Source: Pristiophorus japonicus (taxonomy: Eukaryota). From it: a stretch of DNA of 64,000 nt. The notes under the pieces are model-generated. The model saw only the letters and a program-made list of their open reading frames with translations. It was not told the origin of the DNA and ran no database searches. Each line of letters opens with the position of its first letter. Positions within the stretch are counted from its first letter, which is position 1. Shown here one piece after another: positions 9,601-53,357 of this stretch. The DNA lies in assembly GCF_044704955.1 (NCBI RefSeq), contig NC_091982.1, forward strand, positions 35,340,001 through 35,404,000, read 5' to 3'. Both the position numbers and the translations under genes were made by a program.

Positions 9601-10292
9601 CTGCTTCAGTATGCAGCTGATATAAAATGGTTTTATACAAAGCTGATGTTCTACATTTCCATATAAATTTACAGAAAATCTTTGTAAATGTCAGCTGCAG
9701 GCAAAGATGTGCAAATTTTAAGAGCCGTAAAAAACTGTTTGGGACAAGAAAAGGCCATTTGGTTGATCATGCTCATATATAATCTATCCTATAAGCCCTA
9801 CCATACTCTTAATCTGGAGAGAAAGTTCTTCATAAATACTTGCTAATCTCCAAATGAGATCATGAAAATGTTCACCCATCCTTATATCTGTACCGTTCAC
9901 CCCAGACATGCCTCCCTCCATGCAAAATAATTCTTCTCCCCTGCCCTAACAGCATCATTGGACTCGATATTAACTCCCCCCCATGATGGGCAGGAGAGCG
10001 TCGGAGGTGGGGGGGGAGGGGTGCGTTAAAAAGGCTGCACAGAATACAAATCCAACCCAGCACCATCTTTACGGCGGCGGATATCGGCGCATCAGAGTGT
10101 CCTGCAGTGGAAAGGTGGGACACTTAATTAACATATTTAAATTGGGCTCCCACAGTCCAACTGGGAGCCCGATTTGAAATTTACTGTTGCTGCGAATGTA
10201 TCCCAAAGGCTGGGAAACTCGGCAGTGAAACGGAGGTGGGAGCTGCTTGCTCCACAAGGTAAGTGGCTGTTTACAACCTTCCCCCCATATAC

Positions 10293-10860
10293 AGCTGCAG
10301 CTGTACAAAACCCTGGTTAGCCCACACCTGGAGTACTGTGAGCAGTTCTGGGCACCACACCTTAGGAAGGATATATTGACTTTGGAGGGAGGGCAGTGTA
10401 GGTTTACCAGAATGATACCCGGACTTCAAGAGTTAAGGTAACAGGAGAGATTACATAAATTAGGGTTGTATTCCCTGGAATTTAGAAGATTATGGGATGA
10501 TCTGATCAAAGTTTTCAAGATATTAAGGGGAACAGATAGGGTAGATGGAGAAAAACAATTTCTACTGGCTGGAGACTTTCTAGAACTAGGGGGCTTAGTC
10601 TCATAATTTGAGCCAGACCTTTCAGGTGTTAAATTAGGAAACACTTCTACACACAAAGGGTGATAGAAGTTTGGAACTCTCTTCTGCAGGCAATTGACGC
10701 TAGACCAATTGTTAATTTTAAATTGGAGTTTGATAGCTACCTACCAAAGGCATTAAGGAATATGGGCCAAAGATAAGTATATGGAGTTAGGTCGCAGATC
10801 AGCCATAATCTCATTGAATGATGGAGCAGACTCGAGGGGCTGAGTGGCCTACTCCTGTTC
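10293..10860 (+). mobile_element. CR1 LINE 3' fragment nested in MITE A
   Basis: LQLYKTLVSPHLEYCEQFWAP…; CR1/HER1 tail …TGGCCTACTCCTGTTCC. Confidence 0.9.
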
Positions 10861-10974
10861 CCCCCCCCACCCCCCACAACATTCCCCCAAGCCAACCTCC
10901 ACTGATTGCCAGGGACCATCCCCAAGTGTCCCCAGCTGCCGTTAAGATCGGCAGGATCCCCGGGCTTCCCGGCA

Positions 10975-11487
10975 GGCGTTCTTACAGCCTGACAAAAGTG
11001 ATGGGTACATAGCGGATCTCGAGCGGAATGGCCCAGAGAGCAAGACCTACACCGAGACTACCTGGTCTATGTGGTGCAGGATGGCAGTCCTGACAAACAG
11101 TTCGATAACGAGGTGGACGGGGACGAGGTTTTCGACATGGATTTCAAGCAGAAGAAGGAGGTGGGGCGGATCCCCGAGTTCCAGCACATCACAATACGGG
11201 AAGGGGAGGCGGGGGTCTCTGCCAACATCGCCATCATGAAGCAGAATTTAAATGTTTGCAAGAACTTGTCGGGCGGGACACCAGAACCCAAATATCCCCC
11301 TCAGACTGCCATGTACTCTGAAGATTCTGTAGAATGGGGACAGCCCAACACGTTGATCTGCCTGGCTGATGGATTCTACCCTCCGCGCATCACCATGAAG
11401 TGGAAAAGAAACAGTGAACCCATGACTGATGGAGTCAACAGCACGGAGTACTATATCAAAAAGGATTATTCCTTCCAGAGATTCTCA
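10975..11487 (+). pseudogene. Processed (intronless) MHC class II alpha chain fragment: leader + alpha1 + N-terminal half of alpha2
   Basis: Frame 11002-11487 is open: …HSGSRAE…YVVQDGSPDKQFDNEVDGDEVFDMDFKQKKEVGRIPEF…GEAGVSANIAIMKQNL…LSGGTPEPK|YPPQTAMYSEDSVEWGQPNTLICLADGFYPPRITMKWKRN…FQRFS. These are hallmark class II alpha motifs, close to shark class IIA as I recall it. No intron at the alpha1/alpha2 junction (11293/11294). The leader RSYSLTKVM is in another frame (frameshift at about 11004). Truncated before the second Ig cysteine; no TM domain or poly(A). Confidence 0.92.
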
Positions 11488-13345
11488 GAGTCCCCGGCAT
11501 TGCCGGTTTCTTTGGCCATTCTCGGGCTCCCCCGCACCCTCCCTGCCTCCCCGTAAATATCAGGGCCATTGGATCCAGCAGAATATTGAACACCTAGGTC
11601 GATTTCCAGCTTTCTATACTTATTTCAAGCATCTCAAAGTCTTCTGAAAACTCAAAACTATCCCTGCAGAAAGGGAAAGTTCGTGGCAGGGAAAGTGTTT
11701 GGTTCCATATTACATCAGCCATTCTCCACCCAACTGTTTGACTATCATTTCCTCTACATAATGCACACTTCCCCTTGTTATTCCTCTGCAAGATAATAGA
11801 CCACAGAAAGAAAGATTTTTAGAATCAATGACTGTTTTACCATGGAACAATCTTCAATTTCAGGAAAAATCTAGAGGATTAAAAGAAAGAAGTGTACTTT
11901 TTGATATGAAAGTCTAATGAATTGATCGGAGGATAAATGCCCGTCGGCTCTGACATTTCGCCATCAACTCTGGCACATTCTTCTTTCGGGTGGGGGGGAG
12001 GAATCAAATCTATTTTGATCTGCAGACATGTCTGATCAAGTAAATCCAAAGTTAAGTCTCATAAATAAATAGTACACAAGTTAAGTCCAAGCATGGTTTT
12101 GACACTATTAGTTCAAATTAACAAGTGCAGTTCATTTTGAGCTGAGCCAAACAGGCCAGGAAGTTTGCAGGTTGAATTTCTCCGCCCCACAGCAAAAGAC
12201 AATTGGCCAAGGTTTCTGTTCAGCATCAGTATCCAGCAAACCTTACTGAAAGTCTGTGAGAATAGTGTTTTTGACAGGAACAAGTCAAGTTGCAGTGCTG
12301 CCACAGTCGAATAACCTGCCTGGACAAACCAGGATAAGGCTATCACAAGAATACTGGCCACTTCCGTGAAGTACCAAAGGACACTAAGTGCCTGTGGAAT
12401 ATAGGAACAGGAGTAGGCCATTAAGCCCATCAGCCCTGCTCCGCCATTCAATGAGATCACGACTGATCTGTACCTCAACTCCATTTGCTCACCTGTGCTC
12501 CACATTTTTTTATACCCTTATCTAACAAAAAACTATCTCAGTCTTGAAAGTTTCAATTGTCCCAGCAACCGCTGCCTTTTGGGGGAAGAGAGTTCCAGAT
12601 TTCTATTACCCTGCTGTGGAAAATCTGCTTCCCGATTTTACTCCTGAATGGCCAACTCTAATTTTAAAATGAAGTCCCCTTGTCCTAACAAATTTTTTTA
12701 ACATTTTACACAGCTCAGTCAAATCACCCCTTAATCTCCTATACTTAAGGCAATGCAAGCCAAGTTTATGCAACCTATCACTTTAACCCTCTCATCCTTG
12801 GTATCATTCTGGTGAATCTGCACTGCACCCCTTCCAAGGCTAACATATCCTTCTTGAGTTGCGGTGCCCAAAGACTGAACGCCGAACTCTAGGTGGGGTC
12901 TGATCAAGGCTCTAAATAACTGAAGCATAACTTCCTCCCCTTTGTATTCCAGCCCCCTTGAACTAAAGGCCAGCATTCCATTAACCTTTTTGATTGCTTT
13001 TTGTACTTGACTACTGGCTTTGAATAATTTGAGTACTTGGGACTCCCAAATCTCTTTGCTCCTCTATGGTCCCTAGTTTCTTACCATTTAGAAAATATTC
13101 TGAGATATCTTTGGTTCAAAGTGGATGGCCTCACACTTGCCCACATTGAACTCCAGTTGCCATAGTTTTGCCCACTTATTTAATCTTTCTATGTTCCATT
13201 GCAACTTCCTGCTCCCATCTGTACTACTGTCCCACCTAACTTAGTGTCACCTGCAAATTTGGATATATATGATGAACGTTGATGCCCCAGAACAGATCCC
13301 TGACTAACACCATTTGTCAGATTCAGCCAATCAGAGTACCTACTC

Positions 13346-13840
13346 TGGTACTGACCTGGTACTGATGGTGGGACTGACCTATCAAGAAAGACTGGATCAA
13401 CTGGGCTTGTATTCACTGGAGTTCAGAAGAATGAGAGGGGACCTCATAGAAATGTTTAAAATTCTGATGGGTTTAGACAGGTTGGATGCAGGAAGAATGT
13501 TCCCAATGTTGGGGAAGTCCAGAACCAGGGGTCACAGTCTAAGGATAAGGGGTAAGCCATTTAGGACCGAGATGAGGAGAAACTTCTTCACCCAGAGAGT
13601 GGTGAACTTGTGGAATTCTCTACCACAGAAAGTTGTTGAGGCCAATTCACTAAATATATTCAAAAGGGAGTTAGATGAAGTCCTTACTAATCGGGGGATC
13701 AAGGGGTATGGCGAGAAAGCAGGAAGGGGGTACTGAATTTGCATGTTCAGCCATGAACTCATTGAATGGCGGTGCAGGCTAGAAGGGCCAAATGGCCTAC
13801 TCCTGTACTTATTTTCTATGTTTCTATGTTTCTATGTTTC
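13346..13840 (+). mobile_element. Young CR1/HER1 3' end
   Basis: Open ORF end GLTYQERLDQLGLYSLEFRRMRGDLIE…GIKGYGEKAG; (TTTCTATG)n tail. Confidence 0.92.
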
Positions 13841-14131
13841 TACCCATTATCCCCATTCTCTATCTCCTACCTCCCAATCAATTTCCAATCCAGCTCAAAA
13901 GGCTACCTCCAATACTCTTTGCTTTCATTTTTGCTAATAATCCCTGGTGTAGAATCTTATCAAATGCCTCTGGAAGTCCATCTATATAACATTCAGAGAC
14001 GCTCTCTTATTTACCTTATTAGTGACCATCTCAAAAATTCCAACTAAATTTGTCAAACATGAATTACCCTCAACAAAGGCATGTTGGCTCTCTCTGATCA
14101 ACTCATATTTGTTCAAGTGCTTAGTCACTGT

Positions 14132-16562: not shown

Positions 16563-17032
16563 GTACTTCCTTTCTTTCTTTCTATTGTACTAAATAGCTC
16601 CCACTGTTTTTCTGCAGGTTAACAGCTCGGCCCAGTTTAACATGTTCAGTTTATGTTTCATTCCTTCAAAGTCAGCCGTATTTAATTTTAAATCCTTGGT
16701 TGCTGTACGATCCTTTTCCTTTTCGAACATAATGTCGAACTCGAACATGTTATGGTTACTGTTTGCAAGATGCCCCCTTACTGTCAGATTATTAATTAAT
16801 TCTGGCTCGTTACTAATTACTAAATCTAGTGTGGTCTGATCCCTTGTCGGTTGTAAACATACTGGCCCCGATACGAACAGGGAACCAGGGAGGGTGCGCA
16901 GGAGGCCATAATCAAAGAACCCGGCGAGGACGAGAACGTGGAGGTCCTTCTGATCTTAACGGCAGGACCTCATTAGAATACTGTTGGGCCGCTTCCCGAC
17001 CAGCAGGTGGTAACATTTCAAGGAGGAAAAAC

Positions 17033-20000
17033 TGTGTCCTCACACACTACTATAAATTCACACTAGGCACATTCTGCAGACAAGGTCAATCAGTGACCCA
17101 AACCTTTATTCACAGGACCAAGAAGTGATGACCCTGCATGGGACCTCCCTTTATATACCTGGATGACAAGGTGAGTAGTATCTCCCACAAGTTCACCCCC
17201 TGTGGTCAAGGTGTGCATTTCTTAGGTGTATACAGTATGCAGTGTTGTTACATGAAGGTTACAGTTACATGAAGATTACATACATGCCATCACCTCCCCC
17301 CCAACGTCTTATGGGGTCAAAGATTAAGTCTTTCAGGCGGTCAACACTCTCGTGTGGAGCGCCGCAGTTGGGGCTCTGGTTGTTGAGCCTTGGCATGTGT
17401 CTCTATCACCTGTGGTGATTCCGGCTTGTCCGGGCTGGCCGCAGTGACTGTGCATGCTGCTGAAAGTTCTTGTTGCTCGTTCATTGACGGTGGTGTGGGC
17501 AACATCTCATGATCTTCCTCAGGTTCCTCAGTGTCCATGCTGAACCTTTTTTTTTAAACTTGGTCCAGATGCTTGCGGCATATCTGTCCATTGTTAAGTC
17601 TGACTACTATGACCCTATTCCCCTCTTTGCCAATTACAGTACCCTCAAGCAACTTAGGTCCCAAAGCGTGATTAAGAACAAATACAGAGTCATCGATTTC
17701 TATACATCTCCCCTTTGAGTTACTGTCATGGCACTCATTTTGGGACTGGCGCTTGCCCTCAACAATGTCTGACAGGACTGGATGAATGAGGGACAGCCGA
17801 GTTTCAAGTGTACGTTTCATGAGTAAGCGAATGAGGGCGGGACATATAGGCCAGCAGGAGGCGCGATAGGTGAGCAATGAAGGGAGGGTCCTTGAATCCG
17901 GAGCATACCTTGTTTTATGATTTGGACCGTACATTCCGCCTGGCCAATGGAAGCCGGCTTGAACGGTGCTGTCCTGACATGTTTGATGCCATTACCAGAC
18001 ATGAACTCCCGGAATTCATAGCTAATGAAACACGGGCCGTTGTCTCTAACCAGGATGTCCGGCAAGCCGTGGGTTGCAAAGACCGCATGCAGATTCTCCA
18101 CAATGGTGGATGTCATGCACGAATTCAATATGATGTACTCGATCCATTTCGAGTACGCATCAACAACGAGGAACATTTTTCCCATGAACGGGCCCGCGTA
18201 GTCTACGTGAATACGTGACTATGGCCTGGTGGGCCAGGGCCACGGGCTGAGTGGGGCCTCCCTGGGGGCATTGCCCAGCTGGGCACACGTCGTGCACCTG
18301 CGAACACAGTGTTCCAGGTCTGAGTCAATTCCCGGCCATCATACATGTGATCGGGCAATGGCCTTCATTAGCACGATGCCTGGGTGCTCACTGTGGATCT
18401 CCCTGATGAATGCTTCCCTTCCCTTCTGGGGTATGACCACCCGGCTGCCCCATAGTAGGCAGTCGGCTTGGATGGAGAGCTCATCCATCCGTCTGTGAAA
18501 CGGTCTGACCTCCTCGAGGCATGCTCCGTGTGCGGGCGCCCAATCCCCAGTCAGGACACATTTCTTAATCAAGGATAGGAGGGGATCTCTGTTTGTCCAA
18601 ATTTTGATCTGGCGGGCTGTGATGGGGGAGCCTGCGCTATCAAAGGCATCGACAGCCATGACCATCTCAGCGCTTTGCTCCGCTGCCCCCTCAGTGGTGG
18701 CCTGTGGAAGCCTGCTGAGCGCGTCAGCGCAATTTTCGGTGCCTGGCCGGTGCCGTATGGTGTAGTCATACGCAGCCAGCGTGAGAGCCCATCGCTGTAT
18801 GCGAGCTGACACATTGGCATTGACAGCTTTGCTGTCTGACAACAGGGATGTTAACGGCTTGTGGTCTGTTTCTAACTCGAACCTTCTGCCAAAAAGGTAC
18901 TGGTGCATCTTTTTTACCCTGTAGACACATGAGAGTGCTTCCTTTTCAACCATCCTATATCCCCTTTCTGCTTGGGAGAGCGACCTGGAGGCATAAGCCA
19001 CAGGTTGGAGTTGGCCCTCATTACTCTGCTGCAATACGCACCCAACCCCATAAGATGATGCATCACATGTCAAAAGCAATTTCTTACAGGGGTTGTACAG
19101 GGTCAACAGCTTATTAGAACAAAGCAGGTTCCATGCCCGATTGAAAGCCCGTTTGTGACAGTCCCCCCAAAACCAATCGCAACCCTTACGCAGGAGCACG
19201 TGTAGTGGCTCCAACAATATGCTTAAGTTTGGCAGAAAGTTCCCGAAATAATTCAAGAGTCCCAGAAATGTACGCAACTCCGATGTGTTGCCGGGCCTGG
19301 GCGCACGACAAATCGTCTCCATTTTGGATTTGTTAGGCCGGATCCCGTCTGCGGCAACCCTCCTGCCCAAAAACTCGACCTCTGGGGCAAAAACACATAC
19401 TTGGACTTCTTTAGTCGCAGGCCTACTCGGTCCAGTCGGCGTAGCACCTCCTCCAGGTTGTGGAGGTGTTCCTCGGTGTCTCGACCCGTGATAAGGATGT
19501 CGTCCTGAAATACGATTGTTCCAGGGATGGATTTGAGCAGGCTTTTCATGTTCCTTTGAAAGATAGCGGCTGCTGATCGAATGCCAAACGGACACCTGTT
19601 GTAGACAAACAGCCCCTTGTGTGTGGTGATGGTGGTCAGTAGCTTGGATTCTTCGGCCAGTTCCTGGGTCATGTCGGCTGAAGTGAGGTCCAACTTGGTG
19701 AACAGCTTGCCGCCTGCTAGCATGGCAAAAAGATCCTCCACTCTCGGAAGCGGGTATTGGTCTTGTAGTGACACTCGGTTGATAGTGGCCTTGTAGTCAC
19801 CACAGATCCTGACTGAGCCATCCGTTTTTAGGACAGGGACGATGGGGCTTGCCCAGTCGCTGAATTCAACGGGTGAAATTATGCCCTCTTTTAGCAACCT
19901 GTCCAACTCACTCTCAATTTTCTCCCGCATCACATACGGCACAGCTCTGGCTTTGTGGTGCACTGGTCTGGCGTCCGGGGTGATGCGTATCACTATTTTG

Positions 20001-21764
20001 GTACCTTTGAAAGTCCCGACACCAGGTTGAAATAGTGACTCAAATTTCTGTAGGACCTGTGAGCATGAACTTCACTCCACAGATGAAATGGCATGCACAC
20101 CCCCCCATTTCCAGTTCATCTCGGCTAGCCAGCTCCTCCCCAAAAGCGCGGGACCATTTCCCGGGACAATCCAGAGTGGCAGCCGGTTCTCTGATCCATT
20201 ATGTGTGACCACCAACATTGCACTGCATAGCACTGGGATGATCTCTTTGGTGTACGTCCGTAATTGCGTGTCAATGCGTTCTAGTTTGGGTCTGCTAGCT
20301 CTGAGTGCCATAGTTTCTCAAATTGTTGGACACGCATAAGTGACTGGCTGGCCCCTGTGTCCAGCTCCATGCGTACCAGGATGCCATTTAATAGGACTTT
20401 CATCATCATAGGTGGTGTTTTGGTATATGAGCTGTGGATGTCTGCCACATGAACCCGCTGAACTTCAGCGTCCATTGCTTTGTCCCAAGCATCAACCTGC
20501 CCTGCAGACCCCTCTTGTGGTTCATCTGCCTTTTAAATTAGCCTCGCTGCGGGCTTCCTGCACATTCTGGCTAAATGTCCACTGAAGTTACAATTTCTAC
20601 AGATAAATTGTTGAAACCTACAGGTTTTTGCAGCATGTCTGTCCCCGCATGAGCTGAGATTGTTGTGAACAAAAGAGCTGTTACCAGGCATTCCTCTCTG
20701 ATTGTCTCTTTGATTACTCTTGAGCACTCTGTTAGTGGGTGTCAATGGCCCCATCCCGGGACGTATTGTCCACTGTGATGGTGTAAATGTCCGTTCAACC
20801 TGCCATTGTCTCTGTTGAGGACCCACTCTAGAGTCTGTTGCTGCCTGGGTGGTGTCGAATTGCCCTTGCCTGCCTGTGGGGTTCTGAGTTGTGTTTACAA
20901 TGTTAACTCCCTGATCCGTTGGAAGCAGAGTTGCGTGCGTATATTATCTTGGTTTCCTCCTCCCCCGCCATGAAGGTCTGAGCTATCAACGCCGCCGCTT
21001 CCAAGGTCAAGTCCTTGATCTCAATTAGCTTTCTGAAAATCCCGGCATGCCCAATGTCCTCAATGAAGAAATCCCTTAACATCTCCCCCCTGCAGGCGTT
21101 TGTGAACTTACAGAAGCTGGCCAAGCGCCAAAGGTCCACAACGAAGTCCGGTATGCTCTGTCCTTCCCGACGTCGGTGTGTAAAGAATCGGTGTCGGGCC
21201 ATGTGTATACTGCTCGCCGGTTTGAGGTGCTCACCGATCAGTTTGCTGAGCTCTTCAAAGGTTTTGTCCGCCGGCTTCTCGGGTGCGAGTAGGTCTTTCA
21301 TCAGCGCGTACGTCTTAGGTCCACAGCTGGTCAGTAGATGCGCCCTTCGCTTGTCAGCCGCTGCTGCTCCCAGCCAGTCCTCCGTGACAAAACTCTGCTG
21401 GAGCCTCAACGAAATCGTCCCAGTCCTCACCAACACAGTACCGTTCCTCTGTGCTACCGGTGGCCATTCTCGTGAGTCGTTGATTCCCGTTTCTCGTCAG
21501 CAAATGTAGTGTCCTTACACACTACTATAAATTCAAACGAGGCACATTCTGCAGACAAGGTCACTCTGTGACCCGAACCTTTATTCACAGGACCAAGAAG
21601 TGATGATCCTGCGTGGGACCTCCCTTTATATACCTGGATGACCAGGTGAGGAGTGTCTCCCACAAGTTCACCCCCTGTGGTCAAGGTGTGCATTTCTTAG
21701 GTGTATACAGTATGCAGTGTTGTTACATGAAGGTTACAGTTACATGAAGATTGCATACATGACA
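17033..21764 (-). mobile_element. Full-length but decayed Ty3/Gypsy LTR retrotransposon
   Basis: LTRs of about 260 bp at 21505-21764 (5') and 17033-17289 (3'); TSD AAAAC at 17028-17032 and 21765-21769; degenerate PBS TTGCTGACGAG; PPT GGGGGGGAGGTGA; domain order gag-PR-RT-RH-IN. Confidence 0.95.
17340..21470 (-). pseudogene. Gypsy gag-pol, disrupted by frameshifts and stops
   Basis: Gag (20903-21436); zinc knuckle CRNCNFSGHLARMC; protease MELDTGAS; RT WASPIVPV…GDYKATIN…FQDDIL; RNase H TCDASSYGVG…ETDHKPL; integrase HSEHPG, VDAYSKW and DNGPCF. Confidence 0.92.
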
Positions 21765-22968
21765 AAAACGAATGGCAGGAGGCCGCAGCCGGGGCCCATG
21801 GGGACGGTCCCCAGGACTTGGAAAGGAGCATCATCTCCAGGTCACGATCGGGGCGGGGTTGGGGGAGGCCGGTGAGGCTGGAGATTAGTTCTGGGGGAGG
21901 GGCGTGCTGGAAAGAGAGACTCCAGGCAATGATTGGTTGGGACTGGGGGGCTGGGGGAGGCCAAAGGCTTCCTATGAACCTCGGGGGGAGCATTCCTGCC
22001 TCTCCAACCCATGAGCAGTGCTAAAACAGCAGATCTTTCGAACTTGCCTTCTGGAGTTGGCACCTCCCACCTCAGATCTGCTGCCAGGTAGCTCTGGCCT
22101 CCTCCTCATCTCCAGTTAAATTTAAGTCACGGCGCCAATGATGTCATCGGACTGTGGCTTTGGAATGTTAATTCGGTCCTGCTTCCCTTTTGCAGGAGCC
22201 TCGTCAAAGGCTTGACTGCTGTATGTTAAATTTAAAGGGGTGGGAATGGGTTGGGTTACTCGATCCTGATATTTTAACCACCAGCCCCTCCCGCCCGGGG
22301 ATGGTAAAAAAATCGAGTCCTTTGTTTCAGAAAACTGTCTTGGATACACTCTGGAAATTCTTTGTCTTTATGACTTGAGCTGTTTTGCATCTCCCAGTCT
22401 ATGCAAAAATTAAAATCTCCCCTTATAATTGCTCTGCCTTTGTTTCATGCTTCTCTGATGCATCCCATTACTACAATACTCCTGTCAAGAAGTCTTTGGA
22501 TAACGCCTAATAGAGTCTTGCATGCTTTGCTGTTGCTTAATTCGAATTCTGTAGAACTACATTCCAGCAAGGAGTCAACATCTTCAAGAGAGGAGGAGAG
22601 GGAAGAAAATGAGTCAGGAATCTAGGGATAGGGCCACTAAGAGATGAGTAAAATGAACTCACGAGATGATACTGAAATGGCAGGAATGCTGGATTGATAC
22701 TTTGGCTGGAATCTTTACCGTGGAGTTGGGTCAGGAGCGTGTGGGCTGCGTGATGGATGTTTTGGTCAGTGCGTTGTTCAGAGCGATTTTACTTGAAGCA
22801 GTCATGCGCGTTATCCGGCCCTCTTAAATGGAACAGATCTGAGGACGTCATCGATGACTCATTTCCAGCACCAATATTTAAAGCAGCCTTGCACACAACT
22901 CATTTGAAGGTTGCTAAAGGAGTGTGGAAGGTCGAATACAAATATCTCAGTACTGTTCCAAATGTTAA

Positions 22969-24540
22969 ATGATGGATACACAGGCTGCACCCAGATTTAG
23001 TGATGCATCCCTGCATATTCTGGTGAAGGCAGTGAGAGCACGCATGGAGGTCCCGTTCCCTGCTGATAAGCACAGGAGACCTCCCAAAGATACCAAAAGG
23101 GCCTGGCTGGAGATAGCAGAGGAGGTCAGCAGCAGGGATGTTGTCAGGAGGACCTGGATCCAATGCAGGAAACAATTCAATGATCTCATGAGATCAAGAA
23201 GGGTGAGTGCAATGCCACATTCACCTTCATCCTGATGTGTCTGTCACCACATCCCCATCACTCTGCCTTCCCAAGCCTACTCCTACACATCATTCTCACA
23301 CCAATATAGCTTCCAGCTCCACACATCCCTTTCTCTCTATGTACATACATACATCACCGTCTGACTAACCACCCAACACTCGCCTTCATCCGAATACAAT
23401 CATAGCAAGTAACACAACAGAAGGAGGCCGTTTGACAATAGTACGCCTCTCCCTCAGTTACCCGCTACAGATGTAACCTATCCATTCCTTACACTCATTC
23501 CATCACTCTTACTCACCCTTCTCTTTTTTCCCTCCCTGCAGGAGAAAAGAGCCCAGAACATGCGGGAGAGGCAGAGAACCAGAGGTGACCCTCCAGTATT
23601 TACGCAACTGACTCTAGCAGAGGAAGGGGTCCTGGAGATATCGCAAGTTGCAGAACTGGTGGTGGCGGGAGACAGAGCGAGGGAGACATCCCAGCAGCCT
23701 GGTGACAGAATCACACCTCATACAGCAACATAGCATACAGCAGTCATTCATATGGTGACTGATGTCAGCAGCCAGTGAATTTTCATCATGTGCGTAATAG
23801 TAATATTACCCATTTTTAATATAACACTTCTAAATCATCTCTTTAAACAAGTAAACAAGAACAGGTGGTGTTGACAGGGACAGCAGTGGAGACTCCTTGC
23901 CGGAGGGTGCAGGATGCTCCCAGCTTTGCTGAGCTGCATGGAGATGCTGAGCCTCGGGGGCCATCGAGAAAGAGGGTGATCTTGGAGAGGCAGCAACAAT
24001 TGCAGGAGGCTCTGGCATCTTTTGCAGCTGCGATGTCTGCAATGTGCAGAGAATGGAGGAGTCCATCTCCAACATGAGCAGCACCATGTCGCAGGTAATG
24101 GCGACGATGTGCTGTTCTATGGAAAGAATAGACACCTGCACGGAACAGTAAATGTGCCACTCAACATGAGCACATGCTAGCTGTAGACAACAGATGGCAG
24201 ATGCTCATAGATCTCATCTCTAAGAGGGATTTAAATGTTGACTTGGGTCCTTATCACCCCACTGCTGTGCAGCAAGGTGCTCTCCAGCTTCTTGCAAGCA
24301 TGGAGGTGCGGGTGGCCCATGAGAGGGATGATGCTGAGAGGGGATATGGAAGTGGGCCTCCTCTCAAAGTGTCCCACTTCTCCCTCCGTTGCCTCCCCCT
24401 CAGTCAGAGCTCCACATGCTTCCTCGGATCCCGATGCCCCTGCATAGTTGCAGGAGGAGCAGACTTTGGCGGATACATCACAGGCTCCAAAACCCAGAGG
24501 AGGGCCGCCAAAAGTGTCTATACAATCGCAGCAGGGAAGT
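22969..24540 (+). pseudogene. Harbinger Myb/SANT-like DNA-binding protein (spliced: exon 1 22969-23202, exon 2 23542-23701, decayed exon 3 from about 23850)
   Basis: APRFSDASLHILVKAV…AWLEIAEEVSS…RTWIQCRKQFNDL; donor GTGAGT at 23203; polypyrimidine-CAG acceptor at 23541; exon 2 stays in frame as EKRAQNMRERQRTRG…LTLAEE. Confidence 0.85.
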
Positions 24541-24551
24541 GAGCATCCTTC

Positions 24552-25027
24552 CAGACTGATTCCAGGGATGGCTGGACTGACATACGAGGAGAGACTGGAT
24601 CAACTGGGACTTTAAACACTAGAGTTTAGAGGATGAGAGGGGATCTCATAGAAACGTATAAGATTCTGACGGGACGGGACAGGTTAGATGCGGGAAGAAT
24701 GTTCCCGATGTTGGGGAAGTCCAGAACCAGGGGACATAGTCTTAGGATACGGGGTAGGCCATTTAGGACTGAGATGAGAAGAAACTTCTTCACTCAGAGA
24801 GTTGTTAACCTGTGGAATTCCCTGCCGCAGAGAGTTGTTGATGCCAGTTCACTGGATATATTCAAGAGGGAGTTAGATATGGCCCTTATGGCTAAAGGGA
24901 TCAAGGGGTAGGGTGAGAAAGCAGGAAAGGGGTACTGTGGTGAGTGATCAGCCATGATCTTATTGAATGGTGGTGCAGACTCGAAGGGCCGAATGGCCTA
25001 CTCCTGCACCTATTTTCTATGTTTCTA
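24552..25027 (+). mobile_element. Young CR1/HER1 3' end nested in the Harbinger element
   Basis: MRGDLIETYKIL…RRNFFTQRVVNLWNSLP; TTTCTATGTTTCTA tail. Confidence 0.92.
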
Positions 25028-25369
25028 CATCTGGTGAAGCCACAGTGGTTGCACATTGTAGAAGCACATGGAAAAGAAAAAAGACACAAAAGTAGATGCA
25101 TACGGGTATGCATTTGGATGTATGAAAAAATTTTAAGTTTCAGTTATTTTGATGACACAGATAAATGTATTTCTTTGCACCACTTTTCGATCTTGTTCAT
25201 TTTTGCTTGCTACCTTGGAAGTGGCTTCGTCACTTGGAGCGAATGGTGAGATATTACTTAACCTCGAGCATTGAGTGTTTGGGTGAGGGGAATGGCTTGA
25301 TGATTGTTGGGATGCTTTATGGTGTTGTTGCTGGGGGGAACTTAGTACAGCATGTGACAGTCATATGGG

Positions 25370-26786
25370 TGCATTGGAGCAAGTTAAGTAAATCCGGCCA
25401 TGATGCCAGGCAGCAATGTGCACCGCTGCTGGTGCCATCTTCACCTCAGGTTCCTCCTCCTCCTCGTCTTTCACCTGTTCCTCCTCCTCTGTGCTCTGCG
25501 TCTTGCTCCTCCTGCAGCTCCAATCCTCACTGCTGTGCTATTTTGTGCAGTGTGCAAACAACAATGATTCTGGAGACCCTGGCTGGTGCGTACTGAAGAG
25601 CTCCTCCAGATCTGTCAAGGCATCTGAAGCGCATCTTCAGCATGCCTATTGCTTGTTCTATGGCACATCTGGATGGAAATGTGGCTCTCATTATAACAGT
25701 CCTCGGCTTCATTACTTGGCCTCCTCAAGGGTGTCATAAGCCACGTGTTCAGTGGATAACCCTTGTCTCCAAGCAGCCAGCTGGTAAATGTGTTTTTGCG
25801 AAGAGCTTTGGAGGAGGAACTGGCGCATGCAGCACGAAAGAGACATGACAGCTGCCAGGAAATCTGGCGCACACATGCATGATGATCTTTTTATGTTTGC
25901 CGATGAGCTGCACATTGAGGGTATGGAAGTCCTTGAGGTTGACAAACACTCCTGGGTGATGATTGGGTGCCCTGATGGCCACATGTGTGCAGTCGATTAC
26001 GCCCTTCACCCGTGGGAAGTCAGCCAGAGCGGCAAAGCCGAGCATCTGCTCAGTAACACTGGCCTCATCAGTGGCAAGGCTGTCATAATTGGCTGACTTG
26101 TGAAACTTGGCATTGGTCACCTGGGTGATGCATCTATGTGCGGCCGACTGCGAGATCCCGCAAGCGTCTGCTACAGATCCCTGGAAGGAGCCTGAGGCAA
26201 AGAAGTTGAGGGCGGCGGTGACTTTGACAGCCATTGGTAAGGCATGTCCACCAGCTCCTAGTAAAGGATCCTCTAAGAAAGAGTGATCATAGCATGGTGG
26301 AATTTCAGTTGGTGGGTGAGAAAGTTGGATCTCAAACCAGTGTCCTAAGCTTAAATAAAGGAGACTACAAAGGTATGAAGGCAGAGTTGGCTAAAGTGGA
26401 TTTGGAAAATAGATTAAAGTGTAAGACGGTTGATGAGTAGTGGCAGACATTTAAGGAGATATTTCACAACTCTCAACAAAAATATATTCCAATGAGAAGG
26501 AAAGACTGTAAGAGAAGGGATAATCATCTGTGGCTAATTAAAGAAATAAAGGATGGTATCAAGTTGAAAATAATGGCATGTCCAGGAAGCTCATCCTCTG
26601 CCTGTATACCCTGTGTTGGGGGGGGGGTATCGCCTCCGGGGCACTGCAGCCCTGTGATGCCCCCCTCCTATGGAGCATCAGATCATCGAGGGGAAGGCTG
26701 CTGTTGTGGTTGCTGCTGCTGCTGGTGAGGCTCATCTTGATCTGATTCTGAGGACCAAGGTGAGATAGTATAAGTGGCACCCATTT
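25370..26786 (-). pseudogene. HARBI1-like DDE transposase of the Harbinger element, disrupted
   Basis: [59 protein letters not shown] and [16 protein letters not shown], spread over several frames. Confidence 0.9.
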
Positions 26787-50317: not shown

Positions 50318-52485
50318 GGCCCCAAGTTTCCACGTGATTTGCTCCTGATTTTTAGGAGCAACTGGTGTAGAACGGAGTATCTTAGAAATTGGAATTTTCG
50401 TCATTTAGTTTGCTCCAGTTCTAGTCAGTTAGAACAGTTTCACTTTGGAACAGAATTTTTTTTTCAAAAGGGGGCGTGTCCGGCCACTTACGCCTGATTT
50501 CAAAGTTTCGTGAGTGAAAACTTACTCCAAACTAACTTAGAATGGAGTAAGTGAAAATTTTTGTACGCTCGAAAAAACCTTGTCTACACTTTAGAAAATC
50601 AGGCGTAGGTTACAAATCAGGCGTAGGGAATGGTGGGGGGGGGAGGTGTTTAAAGGGAAGTTTACAAACATTAAACACTTCAGTTTTACAAATAAAGAGC
50701 TATCATCAATAATAAATGATAAATACATCAATAAATCAACCAATAAATCAATCAAAAAAAATTAATAAGAAATAATTGTTTTTTTTAAATCAATAAATAA
50801 AACATTTTCTACTTACCGACTGCAGCACCGGGAGCCCTCCAACAGCGTGCTGGGACGCCCCCCTCAGTGTGTCTCTGTCAGTGTCTCTATCTGTCTGTCT
50901 GTGTGTCTCTCATTCTCTGTCAGTGTCTGTGTTTCTGACAGCGAGGGGAGGGGGAGGAGGAGGGTAGAGGGAGAGAGGGGGGGAGCAGAGGGAGGGAAGG
51001 GAGAGGGAAGGGGGAGAAGGGGGAGGGATGGGGAGAAGGGGGAGGGGGGGAGGGATGGGGGAGAAGAGGGGGAGGGGGAGAAGGGGGAGGGAGAGAAGGG
51101 GAGAAGGGGGAGAAAGGAGATGGGGGGAAAGGAGATTGGGGGGAAGAGAAAGAGATTGGGGGGGAAGGAGATTTGGGGGGGGAAGGAGATTGGGGGGGAA
51201 GGAGATTGGGGGGAAGGAGATTGGGGGGGAAGGAGATTGGGGGGGAAGAAGATTGGGGGGGAAGGAGATTGGGGGGGGGGAGAAGGAGATTGGGGGGGGG
51301 AGAAGGAGATTGGGGGGGGGGAGGAGATTGGGGGGGGGAGAAGGAGATTGGGGGGGGGAGAAGGAGATTGGGGGGGGGGGAGAAGGAGATTGGGGGGGGG
51401 GGGGGAGAAGGAGATTGGGGGGGGAGAAGGAGATTGGGGGGGGAGAAGGAGATTGGGGGGGGAGAAGGAGATTGGGGGGGGGAGAAGGAGATTGGGGGGG
51501 GGAGAAGGAGATTGGGGGGGGAGAAGGAGGTTGGGGGGGGAGAAGGAGGTTGGGGGGGGGAGAAGGAGATTGGGGGGGGGGAGAAGGAGATTGGGGGGGG
51601 GGAGAAGGAGATTGGGGGGGGGGGAGAAGGAGATTGGGGGGGGGGGAGAAGGAGATTGGGGGGGGGGAGAAGGAGATTGGGGGGGGGGAGAAGGAGATTG
51701 GGGGGGGGAGGGAGATTGGGGGGGGGAAGGAGATTGGGGGGAAGGAGAAGGGGGAGGGAGGCTGAACGGGCCGGGCCCGAGACTTCGGGCAGGGCCCGTC
51801 CCCAGCACCAGATTTACAGTTGGGGGCGTTGGGTCGGGTTGGGGGGGTGGTAGGAGGGAGGTCGGTTCGGTTCGGTTCAGGTCGGGGGGAGGGAGGTCAG
51901 GTCGGATCCAGTCCGGGGGGCGGGTGTCGGGTCCGGGAGAGCGGGTGTCGGGTTCGGTCCGGGGACGGGCGGGGGTTGGGGGGGGGGGGGGGAGTAGGGG
52001 GGGGTGGGTGTCGGGTCCAGCCCAGGGGGGAGAGAGCGGGTGTCAGGTCCGGGGGGTGGGGGTGTCCGGTCCGGGGTGGGGGGGGCGGGGGCGGGTGTCG
52101 GGTCCGGTCCGGAGGCGGGAGTCGAGTCGGGTCGGGAGGAAGCAGGAGCTGGCCGTGGGAGGAGCCTTATTCATGCAGCCCCAGTGAGGCCATTGGGCCA
52201 GGGCTAGGGGCTGCGTGTTTCGGCCCCTCCCACACAGTTTCAGGTGCCTGGAGCTACTGCACTTGCGTGCCCACTGTAGCGCGCATGTGCAGAGGTCCCG
52301 GCACTGTTTTCGGCGCAGGGACCTGGCTCCGCCCCCTACAGCTCGTGCTGCGCTGCGCCGAGGGCCAGAGGACCTGCAGGGAGGTGGAGAATCTGGAGGT
52401 TTTTTTTAGGCGCACTTTGTGGCGCGAAGAACGGGCGTCCAGGTCGGGACTGCGCCGTTCTAGGCGCAGCTCGAAACTTGGGCCC
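50318..52485. mobile_element. MITE family B, long copy with expanded G-rich repeats, inserted in a DeuSINE (50240-50317 plus 52486-52605)
   Basis: TIR GGCCCCAAGTTTC / GAAACTTGGGCCC; perfect TSD GTA at 50315-50317 and 52486-52488. Confidence 0.9.
50945..52135 (+). repeat. G-rich minisatellite (GGAGATT-Gn-AGAA)n at about 51115-51750, plus GGGTGTCGGGTCC-type repeats
   Basis: Directly visible tandem units with G runs of variable length. Confidence 0.97.
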
Positions 52486-53357
52486 GTAGTCAATGCTGTA
52501 ATGTAGGAAACGCAGCAGCCAATCTGTGCACCTCAAGCTCCCACAAATAGCAATGTGATAATGATCATGTGATAATGCTAATGTTTAGTCATTTTGATTG
52601 AGGGACTGCCCAGAATTTTCTCTGACTCACCTCATCGCTATCTTACAAGAGATGGATGTGTAAACAGAAAGAGATTTGAGTTGAAACAGCAGGATTACCT
52701 ACATGCAGCACATACGCTGGTTGTGGCTTGAGCTTGTGAAACAGACGCACACTGCAAAGTAGGTAAAACTAGGCTCATCATAGCAGAGGAGCTATTATTT
52801 GAGAGCATTTATGAAAAGTGTAAAACAGTTACTGGCTGGGACATGTATTGATTTTTTTTCAGTCAGTGCTGAAATTGGCTTGGCAACCAAGACTCCCACA
52901 CCATTCTGTGTCCTATCCGAGAGTCAATGCCCTCTGAAAATGAGCATGTGGGCCAAAAGCTCTGATCATGCTGAGCATGTTTCCTTGTAACTTTTTGATA
53001 AATGTATGACATATACCAGAAGGCTAACTTTCAATGTTACTAGTTGGCGTATGCACCCAAGAGTTGTGAAACTGTTTCTGAACCAGGGCTTTTAAAAGGA
53101 ACAAGGGCCAAGCACTATGACATTCTGAAAGCTACAGCAAAGTGGCTTCAGTACCTAAAAGTTAGGTGTCGTGTCCAAATAATCTGACGTACCTTCCTAT
53201 TGTGCTGTATATAGAAGCTGAAGGTACCAGTGACATTCATAATAAGTTCCAAGGATCATTTGTAGGCCAACTCCCTCACACCCATTGTCCTCAACAGACA
53301 TATTGCTCTCTGTGTGGGTAATTTTGACTTTTGGGTGATATCGTCAATAAAGAAACA

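Follow-up and report, generated by a model that had tools for sequence, protein, structure and literature searches.

The 64,000 nt of Pristiophorus japonicus DNA analyzed in this study (GCF_044704955.1, contig NC_091982.1, positions 35,340,001-35,404,000, forward strand; hereafter the window) contain a small, old DNA transposon in which a young, intron-free piece of an MHC class II alpha gene is lodged, and this piece is most likely RNA-derived sequence that was pasted in during repair of a DNA break. The locus is a genomic scar, and is neither a working gene nor a demonstrated mobile immune module.

The class II alpha insert

Confident class II alpha homology covers 459 bp (11029-11487, forward strand) and consists of the end of the leader, the whole alpha1 domain and two thirds of the alpha2 domain of a classical MHC class II alpha chain; it is free of introns, and none of its 153 codons is a stop. 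The leader end and the complete alpha1 (peptide-binding) domain occupy 11029-11292; the alpha2 (C1-set) domain follows at 11293-11487 and breaks off two thirds of the way through, in mid-exon after the residues ...FQRFS. These boundaries were drawn from Pfam and from alignments to 24 shark and ray proteins. The open frame of the insert matched the Pfam MHC_II_alpha profile (1.4e-16, profile positions 5-80 of 81) and, adjoining it in that same frame, the C1-set profile (6e-14, profile positions 3-62 of 86). In shark class II genes alpha1 is encoded by exon 2 and alpha2 by exon 3 (PMC8010645, Table 2 legend). The two domains of the insert are joined seamlessly at 11292/11293, with the intron absent at this conserved exon border, and thus the insert is RNA-derived in form. 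One homologue in the protein alignment, P0027, has an extra 53-residue stretch exactly at the alpha1/alpha2 junction. The sequence-only reading had described an intronless class II alpha piece of 513 bp, about 80 bp from the right end of the element, as spliced cargo held between both ends of a TIR-type element. That description agrees with our results: the piece measures about 515 bp when the 56 nt to the left of the confident homology (10973-11028) are included, and its right border is 80 bp from the right end of the element.

The rest of the class II alpha gene is missing, namely the remainder of the alpha2 domain, the connecting peptide, the transmembrane segment and the tail, and the fragment ends about 95 residues before the end of the 247-residue proteins. 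No poly(A), A-run, microsatellite or LINE tail was found at the 3' end of the insert, where position 11487 lies in the middle of exon 3 and element sequence follows directly. For these reasons the insert is not a canonical retrocopy. Neither a significant leader nor an in-frame ATG occurs upstream of the insert. The 56-nt segment between the host element and the confident homology (10973-11028, forward strand) is a candidate for exon 1/leader of the source mRNA, or else for filler. Frameshift-aware alignment of 10925-11030 to shark leader peptides gave scores of 17-19, no better than random window segments, whose mean was about 17, and 10973-11028 had no other match within the window.

The protein encoded by the insert is 83% identical to class II alpha of P. 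japonicus and 65-79% identical to class II alpha of other sharks and rays. The differences from the P. japonicus protein (P0001) are distributed very unevenly. The alpha2 part is identical at all 63 residues, whereas the leader end and alpha1 differ at 29 of 89 (Fisher 2e-8). Because alpha2 is identical while alpha1 differs at about one third of its positions, the insert is a young copy of another allele or paralogue. Only 6 of its residues are absent from all 24 living homologues, and real genes range from 3 to 10 by the same count. These results indicate that the insertion is recent and that its source was a different allele or paralogue from the annotated sawshark gene. The protein search returned one sawshark class II alpha only and no fragment-like product, and no parent class II alpha gene was found in the 64-kb window.

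The host element and its sister copy

The host element is a 1608-bp non-autonomous repeat (9960-11567) with short, imperfect inverted ends. It is bordered by two identical 3-bp duplications, ATT at 9957-9959 and ATT at 11568-11570. The terminal letters are GGACTCGATATT at 9960-9971 and AATATCAGGGCC at 11556-11567, with an inverted match of 9/12 that extends to 11/15; by our own binomial estimate at fixed positions, the 11/15 match has a chance probability of about 1e-4. The left TIR (GGACTCGATATTAAC, 9960-9974, forward strand) is therefore complementary to the right TIR (11553-11567) at 11 of 15 positions, and its start, GGACTCGAT, recurs at the sister end at 22320. The terminal repeats and the perfect ATT duplication reported earlier are thus present, with inverted ends that are imperfect. 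A smaller inner element between the TAA triplets at 9972-9974 and 11553-11555 was considered and rejected, since its would-be ends are not inverted. No tRNA-derived SINE head or known RNA family was found in the element.

From left to right, the element begins with a left arm (9960-10278, forward strand) whose conserved blocks align with sister positions 22320-22020; the predicted fold of this arm is unremarkable. A 5'-truncated, CR1-like LINE tail follows as a secondary insertion (10287-10858, forward strand). This tail is 64-89% identical to other LINE copies in the window, is absent from the sister, and is flanked by T(T)CCCCCC at 10279-10286 and 10858-10865, a duplication of 7-8 bp. The middle of the host element (10859-10953, forward strand) has blocks in common with sister positions 21960-21770 and shares an exact 14-mer, CTGCCGTTAAGATC, with the right part of the sister. 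This sister-homologous segment separates the LINE tail from the insert, and the LINE has its own flanking repeat; neither LINE 3' transduction nor a LINE-mRNA chimera was therefore accepted as the origin of the insert.

A degenerate duplication of element sequence flanks the class II alpha piece. Its left copy is GGATCCCCGGGCTTCCCGG at 10954-10972 (forward strand, possibly to 10985) and its right copy is GAGTCCCCGGCATTGCCGG at 11488-11506 (forward strand), which begins at the base after the last MHC codon. The copies are identical at 14 of 19 positions (74%), or possibly span 27 nt with a 5-nt indel, and both map to one sister segment, 16950-16915. The right end of the element, including the right TIR (11488-11567, forward strand), resembles the sister over 45 nt at 78% (16907-16863) or over 67 nt at 76%. 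The right junction has a possible AGAT..CA microhomology, and the left junction has the 56 nt at 10973-11028.

The sister copy lies on the reverse strand as a right part (16864-17027), which includes the uninterrupted counterpart of the MHC insertion site, and a left part (21770-22320), which aligns to the focal left arm. A 4.7-kb LTR retroelement is nested between them (17033-21764, reverse strand), with a GTTTT target duplication, RT and RNase H, and LTRs that differ at 14 of 257 positions. The sister halves were joined in silico solely for alignment across the LTR insertion. Where alignable, sister and focal copy are about 70-76% identical, and the insert is absent from the sister. The TIR match of the sister is 7/9, and the start GGMCYYGAT is common to both copies. 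The sequence-only reading had taken the sister as an empty site. This was borne out insofar as the sister segment that matches the insertion site is contiguous, but the sister is a paralogous empty reference and not an allelic one, being diverged to the degree given above and split by the LTR element. It has no matching target duplication (AAA vs AGT). The 64-kb window contains no further family members, no empty site of either copy and no second copy of the element-MHC junctions.

Judged from these sequence comparisons, the host element looks old, because it has only 70-76% identity to the only other copy in the window, because the sister predates the insertion of an LTR element whose LTRs are about 5% different, and because a LINE has inserted into the focal copy as well. 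This age is judged via the family, and two observations run counter to an old focal copy: its CpG observed/expected ratio of about 0.6 is not below that of the insert, and its 3-bp duplication is intact. The CpG ratio was 0.60-0.65 in the arms, 0.64 in the insert and 0.15 in the LINE piece, and is not a discriminating clock here.

The name Harbinger, which the sequence-only reading had given to the host element, is unproven. The Harbinger transposase/Myb pair that it placed about 11 kb away does exist, as a decayed autonomous relic (22969-26234) 11-15 kb from the host element. The relic comprises a Myb_DNA-bind_5 (Myb/SANT) ORF (22969-23235, forward strand) and a DDE_Tnp_4 region that is frameshifted across three frames (25527-26234, reverse strand). 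Blastn found no similarity of the host element to this relic or to the rest of the window. PIF/Harbinger elements have TWA as their target duplication, and the Pangu group of the same superfamily has ANT (PMC4482050). The ATT duplication of the host element is not TWA, and fits the ANT of the Pangu group. The host element resembles the PHIS superfamily (PIF/Harbinger and Pangu, PMC4482050) in its 3-bp duplication, its short TIRs starting with GG and its form as a small non-coding derivative. It differs from PIF/Harbinger in the duplication, and a matching autonomous partner was not found in the window. Pangu has no vertebrate report in the PMC4482050 survey, and the comparison draws on the two element copies in the window, one of which has no matching duplication.

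Origin of the insert

The explanation that we favor, at a probability of roughly one half, is that RNA-derived sequence patched a resident element at a single locus, either as a class-2 templated insertion or by transposition-independent gap filling. A chromosome break would have occurred inside an already resident, inactive TIR-type element. A fragment of spliced class II alpha mRNA, reaching from about the coding start to the middle of the alpha2 exon, would have been copied into DNA, and this DNA copy would have served as a patch in the repair of the break. A messy re-copy of 19-27 nt of neighboring element sequence is what microhomology-guided template switching or alternative end joining would be expected to leave. 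The outcome would be a dead insert at a single locus. Two names would suit it equally well: class-2 templated sequence insertion, and single-copy "Pack-TIR" that arose by transposition-independent gap filling, here with an RNA-derived filler. A late patch in a resident copy is favored over travelled cargo because the insert is much younger than the family looks. The flanking duplication, at 14/19, seems too diverged to be the target duplication of so young an insert.

Both of these known systems share features with the locus. Class-2 TSIPs lack a target site duplication and poly(A), have NHEJ features and may contain several spliced exons (PMC5110952). Poly(A) and a clean target duplication are likewise missing from the insert, and its template is not in the window. 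As in the class-2 templated insertions of Onozawa and Aplan (PMC5110952), the template would be a distant transcript in which spliced exons are possible, the junctions may resemble end joining, and the product would be germline-fixed and functionless. Those insertions were described in human. The present case differs in that the insertion site lies within a TIR element, that a long, degenerate re-copy of the acceptor stands at the junction, and that the RNA intermediate is one that we infer. Among animal Pack-TIRs, most single-copy cases result from transposition-independent gap filling with microhomology (Tan et al. 2021; PMC8277862). The locus is similar to these in having host gene sequence between both non-autonomous TIR ends, probably added to an old resident copy, and in the possible switch-point microhomology (AGAT.. 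at the right junction). In that survey the fillers derived from genomic DNA, usually of a neighboring region of the same chromosome, whereas the filler here is spliced.

An atypical retrocopy driven by a LINE is unlikely, though it has several points in its favor. At a nick in the element, a LINE reverse transcriptase would have primed within the class II alpha mRNA and copied toward the 5' end, with the 19-27-nt duplication as its target site duplication. Such an origin would be consistent with the intronless insert, with the duplication of host sequence on both sides of it, and with LINE activity at the same element, where the nested CR1-like tail has its own 7-8-bp duplication. The right copy of the duplication begins exactly where the insert ends, which is a counterpoint to a patch, as it can be read as a genuine, if odd, target duplication of a LINE-driven event. 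The 3' end does not fit, having no poly(A), microsatellite or LINE tail and falling in mid-exon, nor does a duplication that is 74% identical beside an insert that is less than about 2% diverged. CR1-type LINEs also recognize their own 3' ends and rarely copy mRNAs, and this specificity argues against a LINE origin. The insert is similar to a processed pseudogene (a LINE-mediated retrocopy) in that a multi-exon gene has been copied without introns to an unlinked, repeat-rich site, and differs in lacking the mRNA 3' end, poly(A) and a clean target duplication and in retaining the 5' part of the transcript instead of the 3' part.

The remaining explanations are improbable to different degrees. 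There is a small chance that the locus is a true Pack-type element, in which the fragment was captured during the active phase of the family and the composite later transposed, leaving copies with the same junctions elsewhere. Non-TE host sequence is enclosed by both ends of a TIR element, both ends and the perfect 3-bp duplication are intact, and the CpG ratio is no lower in the arms than in the insert. Against such transposition, the junctions have no second copy in 64 kb, the only family member in the window is 24-30% diverged, the ends are imperfect (11/15), and the window holds a single transposase of the superfamily, which is decayed and has no DNA relationship to the element. The earlier description of the insert as Pack-TIR-like cargo is unsupported or unproven: the survey of Tan et al. 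2021 removed intronless captures of multi-exon genes as retroduplicates, a filter (Methods, PMC8277862) that this capture does not pass, and found single-copy cases that form without transposition. A slightly smaller chance is given to copying at the DNA level, by gap filling or gene conversion from an existing intronless class II alpha retrocopy or from an insert-bearing family member, with no RNA involved at the locus. Animal Pack-TIRs normally copy DNA (PMC8277862), and the divergence between the duplication copies could be accounted for by another, diverged family member having supplied part of the flank. This would need an extra step, and no donor is known, the protein search having returned the single sawshark gene product noted above. 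Least probable is an artefact of assembly or library preparation that fused cDNA-like sequence to a repeat. Nested repeats surround the site, which was judged from the assembled sequence. Nevertheless, the window is free of gaps, both junctions continue in register with the element according to the sister copy, and in its alpha1 the insert differs from the annotated gene, which excludes a mis-joined copy of that locus.

Implications for transposons and class II genes

As it stands, the insert is a further example of RNA-derived filler DNA, here inside a transposon. It raises the question of whether such elements only collect patches when they are broken or whether cargo-carrying copies move, and only the latter would be of wider interest. 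Intronless captures are uncounted in animals because they were filtered from the one large Pack-TIR survey (PMC8277862). As a long shot, spliced fragments of immune-gene mRNA may be taken up repeatedly by small PHIS-type elements of the sawshark, with some of the composites transposing; if true, this RNA-fed Pack-TIR system would scatter peptide-binding-domain sequence around the genome. The insert itself preserves an alpha1 domain that differs at about one third of its positions from the annotated gene while its alpha2 is shared, which makes it a datable "fossil" of another allele or paralogue, in a group known for very old class II lineages.

Content and source of the class II alpha fragment

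The focal element, a non-autonomous TIR-type repeat at 9960-11567, carries an MHC class II alpha fragment with confident homology at 11029-11487 (+). A single open frame spans 11002-11556, and Pfam identified in it an MHC_II_alpha domain (1.4e-16, profile 5-80/81) followed directly by a C1-set domain (6e-14, profile 3-62/86). In a protein search, all matches of the fragment were classical class II alpha chains from sharks and rays, and the top one came from Pristiophorus japonicus itself (83%). By alignment, the fragment begins in the final residues of the leader and stops in alpha2 at ...DYSFQRFS, some 95 residues before the C-terminus would be reached. In cartilaginous-fish class II genes, alpha1 is encoded by exon 2 and alpha2 by exon 3 (PMC8010645). 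The alpha1/alpha2 junction of the fragment, at 11292/11293, is seamless, and thus the claim of the sequence-only reading that the class II alpha sequence is intronless stands. One shark/ray homologue, the database prediction P0027, contains 53 extra residues exactly between ..PEPK and PP.TAMY, which resemble a retained intron. The 56 nt at 10973-11028 could be exon 1; in a frameshift-aware alignment with shark leaders they scored no better than random window segments.

The 153 confident codons were compared with 24 full-length homologues, and living genes were assessed in the same test by leave-one-out. The fragment contains no stop codons and six residues that are absent from all 24 homologues (3-10 for living genes), and it departs from just two columns that are invariant elsewhere. 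Compared with the sawshark protein, the leader end and alpha1 differ at 29 of 89 positions, while alpha2 differs at none of 63 (Fisher 2e-8). Neutral decay would strike both domains equally, so the alpha1 differences belong to the source gene, an allele or paralogue other than the one encoding the compared sawshark protein. The split fits the known class II pattern of a variable peptide-binding domain and a conserved Ig-like domain (PMC8010645). Divergence since insertion is estimated at less than roughly 2%, based on 0 changes in ~145 non-synonymous sites. At 11134-11136 the fragment encodes D, a position occupied by Y in every one of the 24 shark and ray chains compared (DGDEVF-Y-MDF); this single-base change, TAC to GAC, is probably one of very few post-insertion substitutions.

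The host element and its relatives

The region 9957-11570 is a nested repeat, the outer shell of which is a non-coding element of 1608 bp (9960-11567). Its ends, GGACTCGATATTAAC and GTAAATATCAGGGCC, form an inverted repeat in which 11 of 15 positions agree, and ATT borders it on each side, in agreement with the earlier description of a TIR element with a perfect ATT target duplication. A sister copy without the MHC insert occupies 22320-16864 of the minus strand, with the same start as the focal copy (GGACTCGAT) and the end ATCGGGGCC. The copies are distant relatives only: blastn matched just 67 nt (76%) between them, and MAFFT and local alignments identified conserved blocks spread over the left arm and, at the right end, a match of 41-45 nt (~78%). 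Neither a third family copy nor an empty site of either copy was found in the 64-kb window.

An LTR retroelement of 4.7 kb (17033-21764, minus) interrupts the sister copy; its ends are TG..CA, and its target duplication, GTTTT, is perfect. This retroelement is nearly complete, with RVT_1 and RNase H (RT_RNaseH) domains in overlapping broken ORFs, and there are 14 mismatches between its two 257-nt LTRs. Thus, the sister copy is older than an insertion that is itself aged at ~5% LTR-to-LTR divergence. The sister copy is embedded in the endonuclease-coding part of a LINE (flanks 16700-16863 and 22321-22500, minus), whose peptide reads ..GDFNFCIDWE..SFLKQ on one side of the site and VCLQPTRDQTTLDLV.. 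on the other. The triplets that border the sister copy, AAA and AGT, are not the same, and it would take a duplication of 2, 5 or 8 bp, not of 3 bp, to bring the LINE back into frame there, which adds to the doubt about the sister copy's target duplication.

With its short TIRs starting with GG and its duplication of 3 bp, the focal element looks like a member of the PIF/Harbinger-IS5 (PHIS) superfamily, a placement to which the sister copy, with its unmatched flanks, gives no support. PIF/Harbinger elements duplicate TWA and the Pangu group duplicates ANT, the latter with no vertebrate report in the survey (PMC4482050). The focal ATT is not TWA and is compatible with the ANT of Pangu. No DNA similarity was found between the host element and the window's Harbinger relic, a decayed autonomous element at 22969-26234, and the host element showed no tRNA-like head or Rfam match. 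In the relic, the Myb_DNA-bind_5 (Myb/SANT) ORF (22969-23235, +) is still open at 88 aa, and DDE_Tnp_4 (25527-26234, -) is broken over three frames; the N-terminal side of the latter ends at 26234, where a plus-strand LINE fragment starts. The label "Harbinger-type" given to the host element earlier is therefore a reasonable guess rather than an established placement.

Elsewhere in the window, a purine-rich minisatellite lies at 50943-51751 (~33 copies of the 20-nt unit GGGGGGAGAAGGAGATTGGG, 90% match), with a less regular G/A-rich array before it. The minisatellite is the source of the long spurious ORFs at 50847-52506 and of a GC skew of 0.59.

Junctions and mode of insertion

The insert retains the 5' and not the 3' part of the transcript, and no mRNA 3' end, poly(A) or LINE tail is present at it; it is without the hallmarks expected of a LINE-made processed pseudogene. 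The focal copy also contains a 5'-truncated CR1-like LINE tail at 10287-10858, with T(T)CCCCCC at each flank, which resembles many copies in the window (64-89%) and is absent from the sister copy. The 95 nt that follow it on the 3' side align with the sister copy again, so the MHC sequence came neither by 3' transduction nor from a LINE-mRNA chimera. The motif GGCCGAGTGGCC, GGCCGA(A/G)TGGCC, has 14 matches in the window compared with 2.9 expected, one of them at 10838-10849, 124 nt 5' of the insert. It belongs to the abundant CR1-like LINE/SINE tail (..GGCCGAATGGCCTACTCCTGT), and thus may be a LINE-tail feature rather than a fixed capture site. One CR1-like tail copy is followed by a (TTTCTATG)n microsatellite at 13813-13842.

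The insert is flanked by a duplication of element sequence, GGATCCCCGGGCTTCCCGG on the left (10954-10972) and GAGTCCCCGGCATTGCCGG on the right (11488-11506, beginning immediately after the last MHC codon). Both correspond to one and the same segment of the sister copy, and the duplication is perhaps ~27 nt long when the GTTCTT and TTTCTT that come next are counted. The two copies are identical at 14 of 19 positions, far too diverged for a target duplication produced so recently. The explanations that remain are a tandem repeat present beforehand, error-prone or multi-step re-copying in alternative end joining, and template switching with a diverged family member. Where the MHC sequence stops on the right, its last bases, ..AGATTCTCA, look like the part of the element that immediately precedes the duplicated block, AGATCGGCA, a likeness that is possibly microhomology.

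Taken together, these features match a break in which a reverse-transcribed patch would have been used for repair. In this combination the insert resembles human class-2 templated sequence insertions, which have no TSD or poly(A), carry NHEJ marks and sometimes contain several spliced exons (PMC5110952). Single-copy Pack-TIRs of animals have been ascribed, in one survey, to gap filling that is guided by microhomology and independent of transposition; that survey deliberately removed intronless captures, so the sawshark case, likened earlier to a Pack-TIR, falls just outside its definition (PMC8277862). What the sequence-only reading described is thus confirmed, and its interpretation is supported in part. 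The most likely reading, with a probability of about one half, is that an RNA-derived patch was recently added, at a single locus, to a PHIS-type element already resident there.

Possible movement after capture

Indirect evidence leans, though not conclusively, against transposition after capture: the family looks old, the insert is young, the ends are imperfect and the only nearby transposase of the superfamily is dead. The arms have a CpG content of 0.60-0.65, not below the 0.64 of the insert. The interest of the finding is modest, unless such composites turn out to move.
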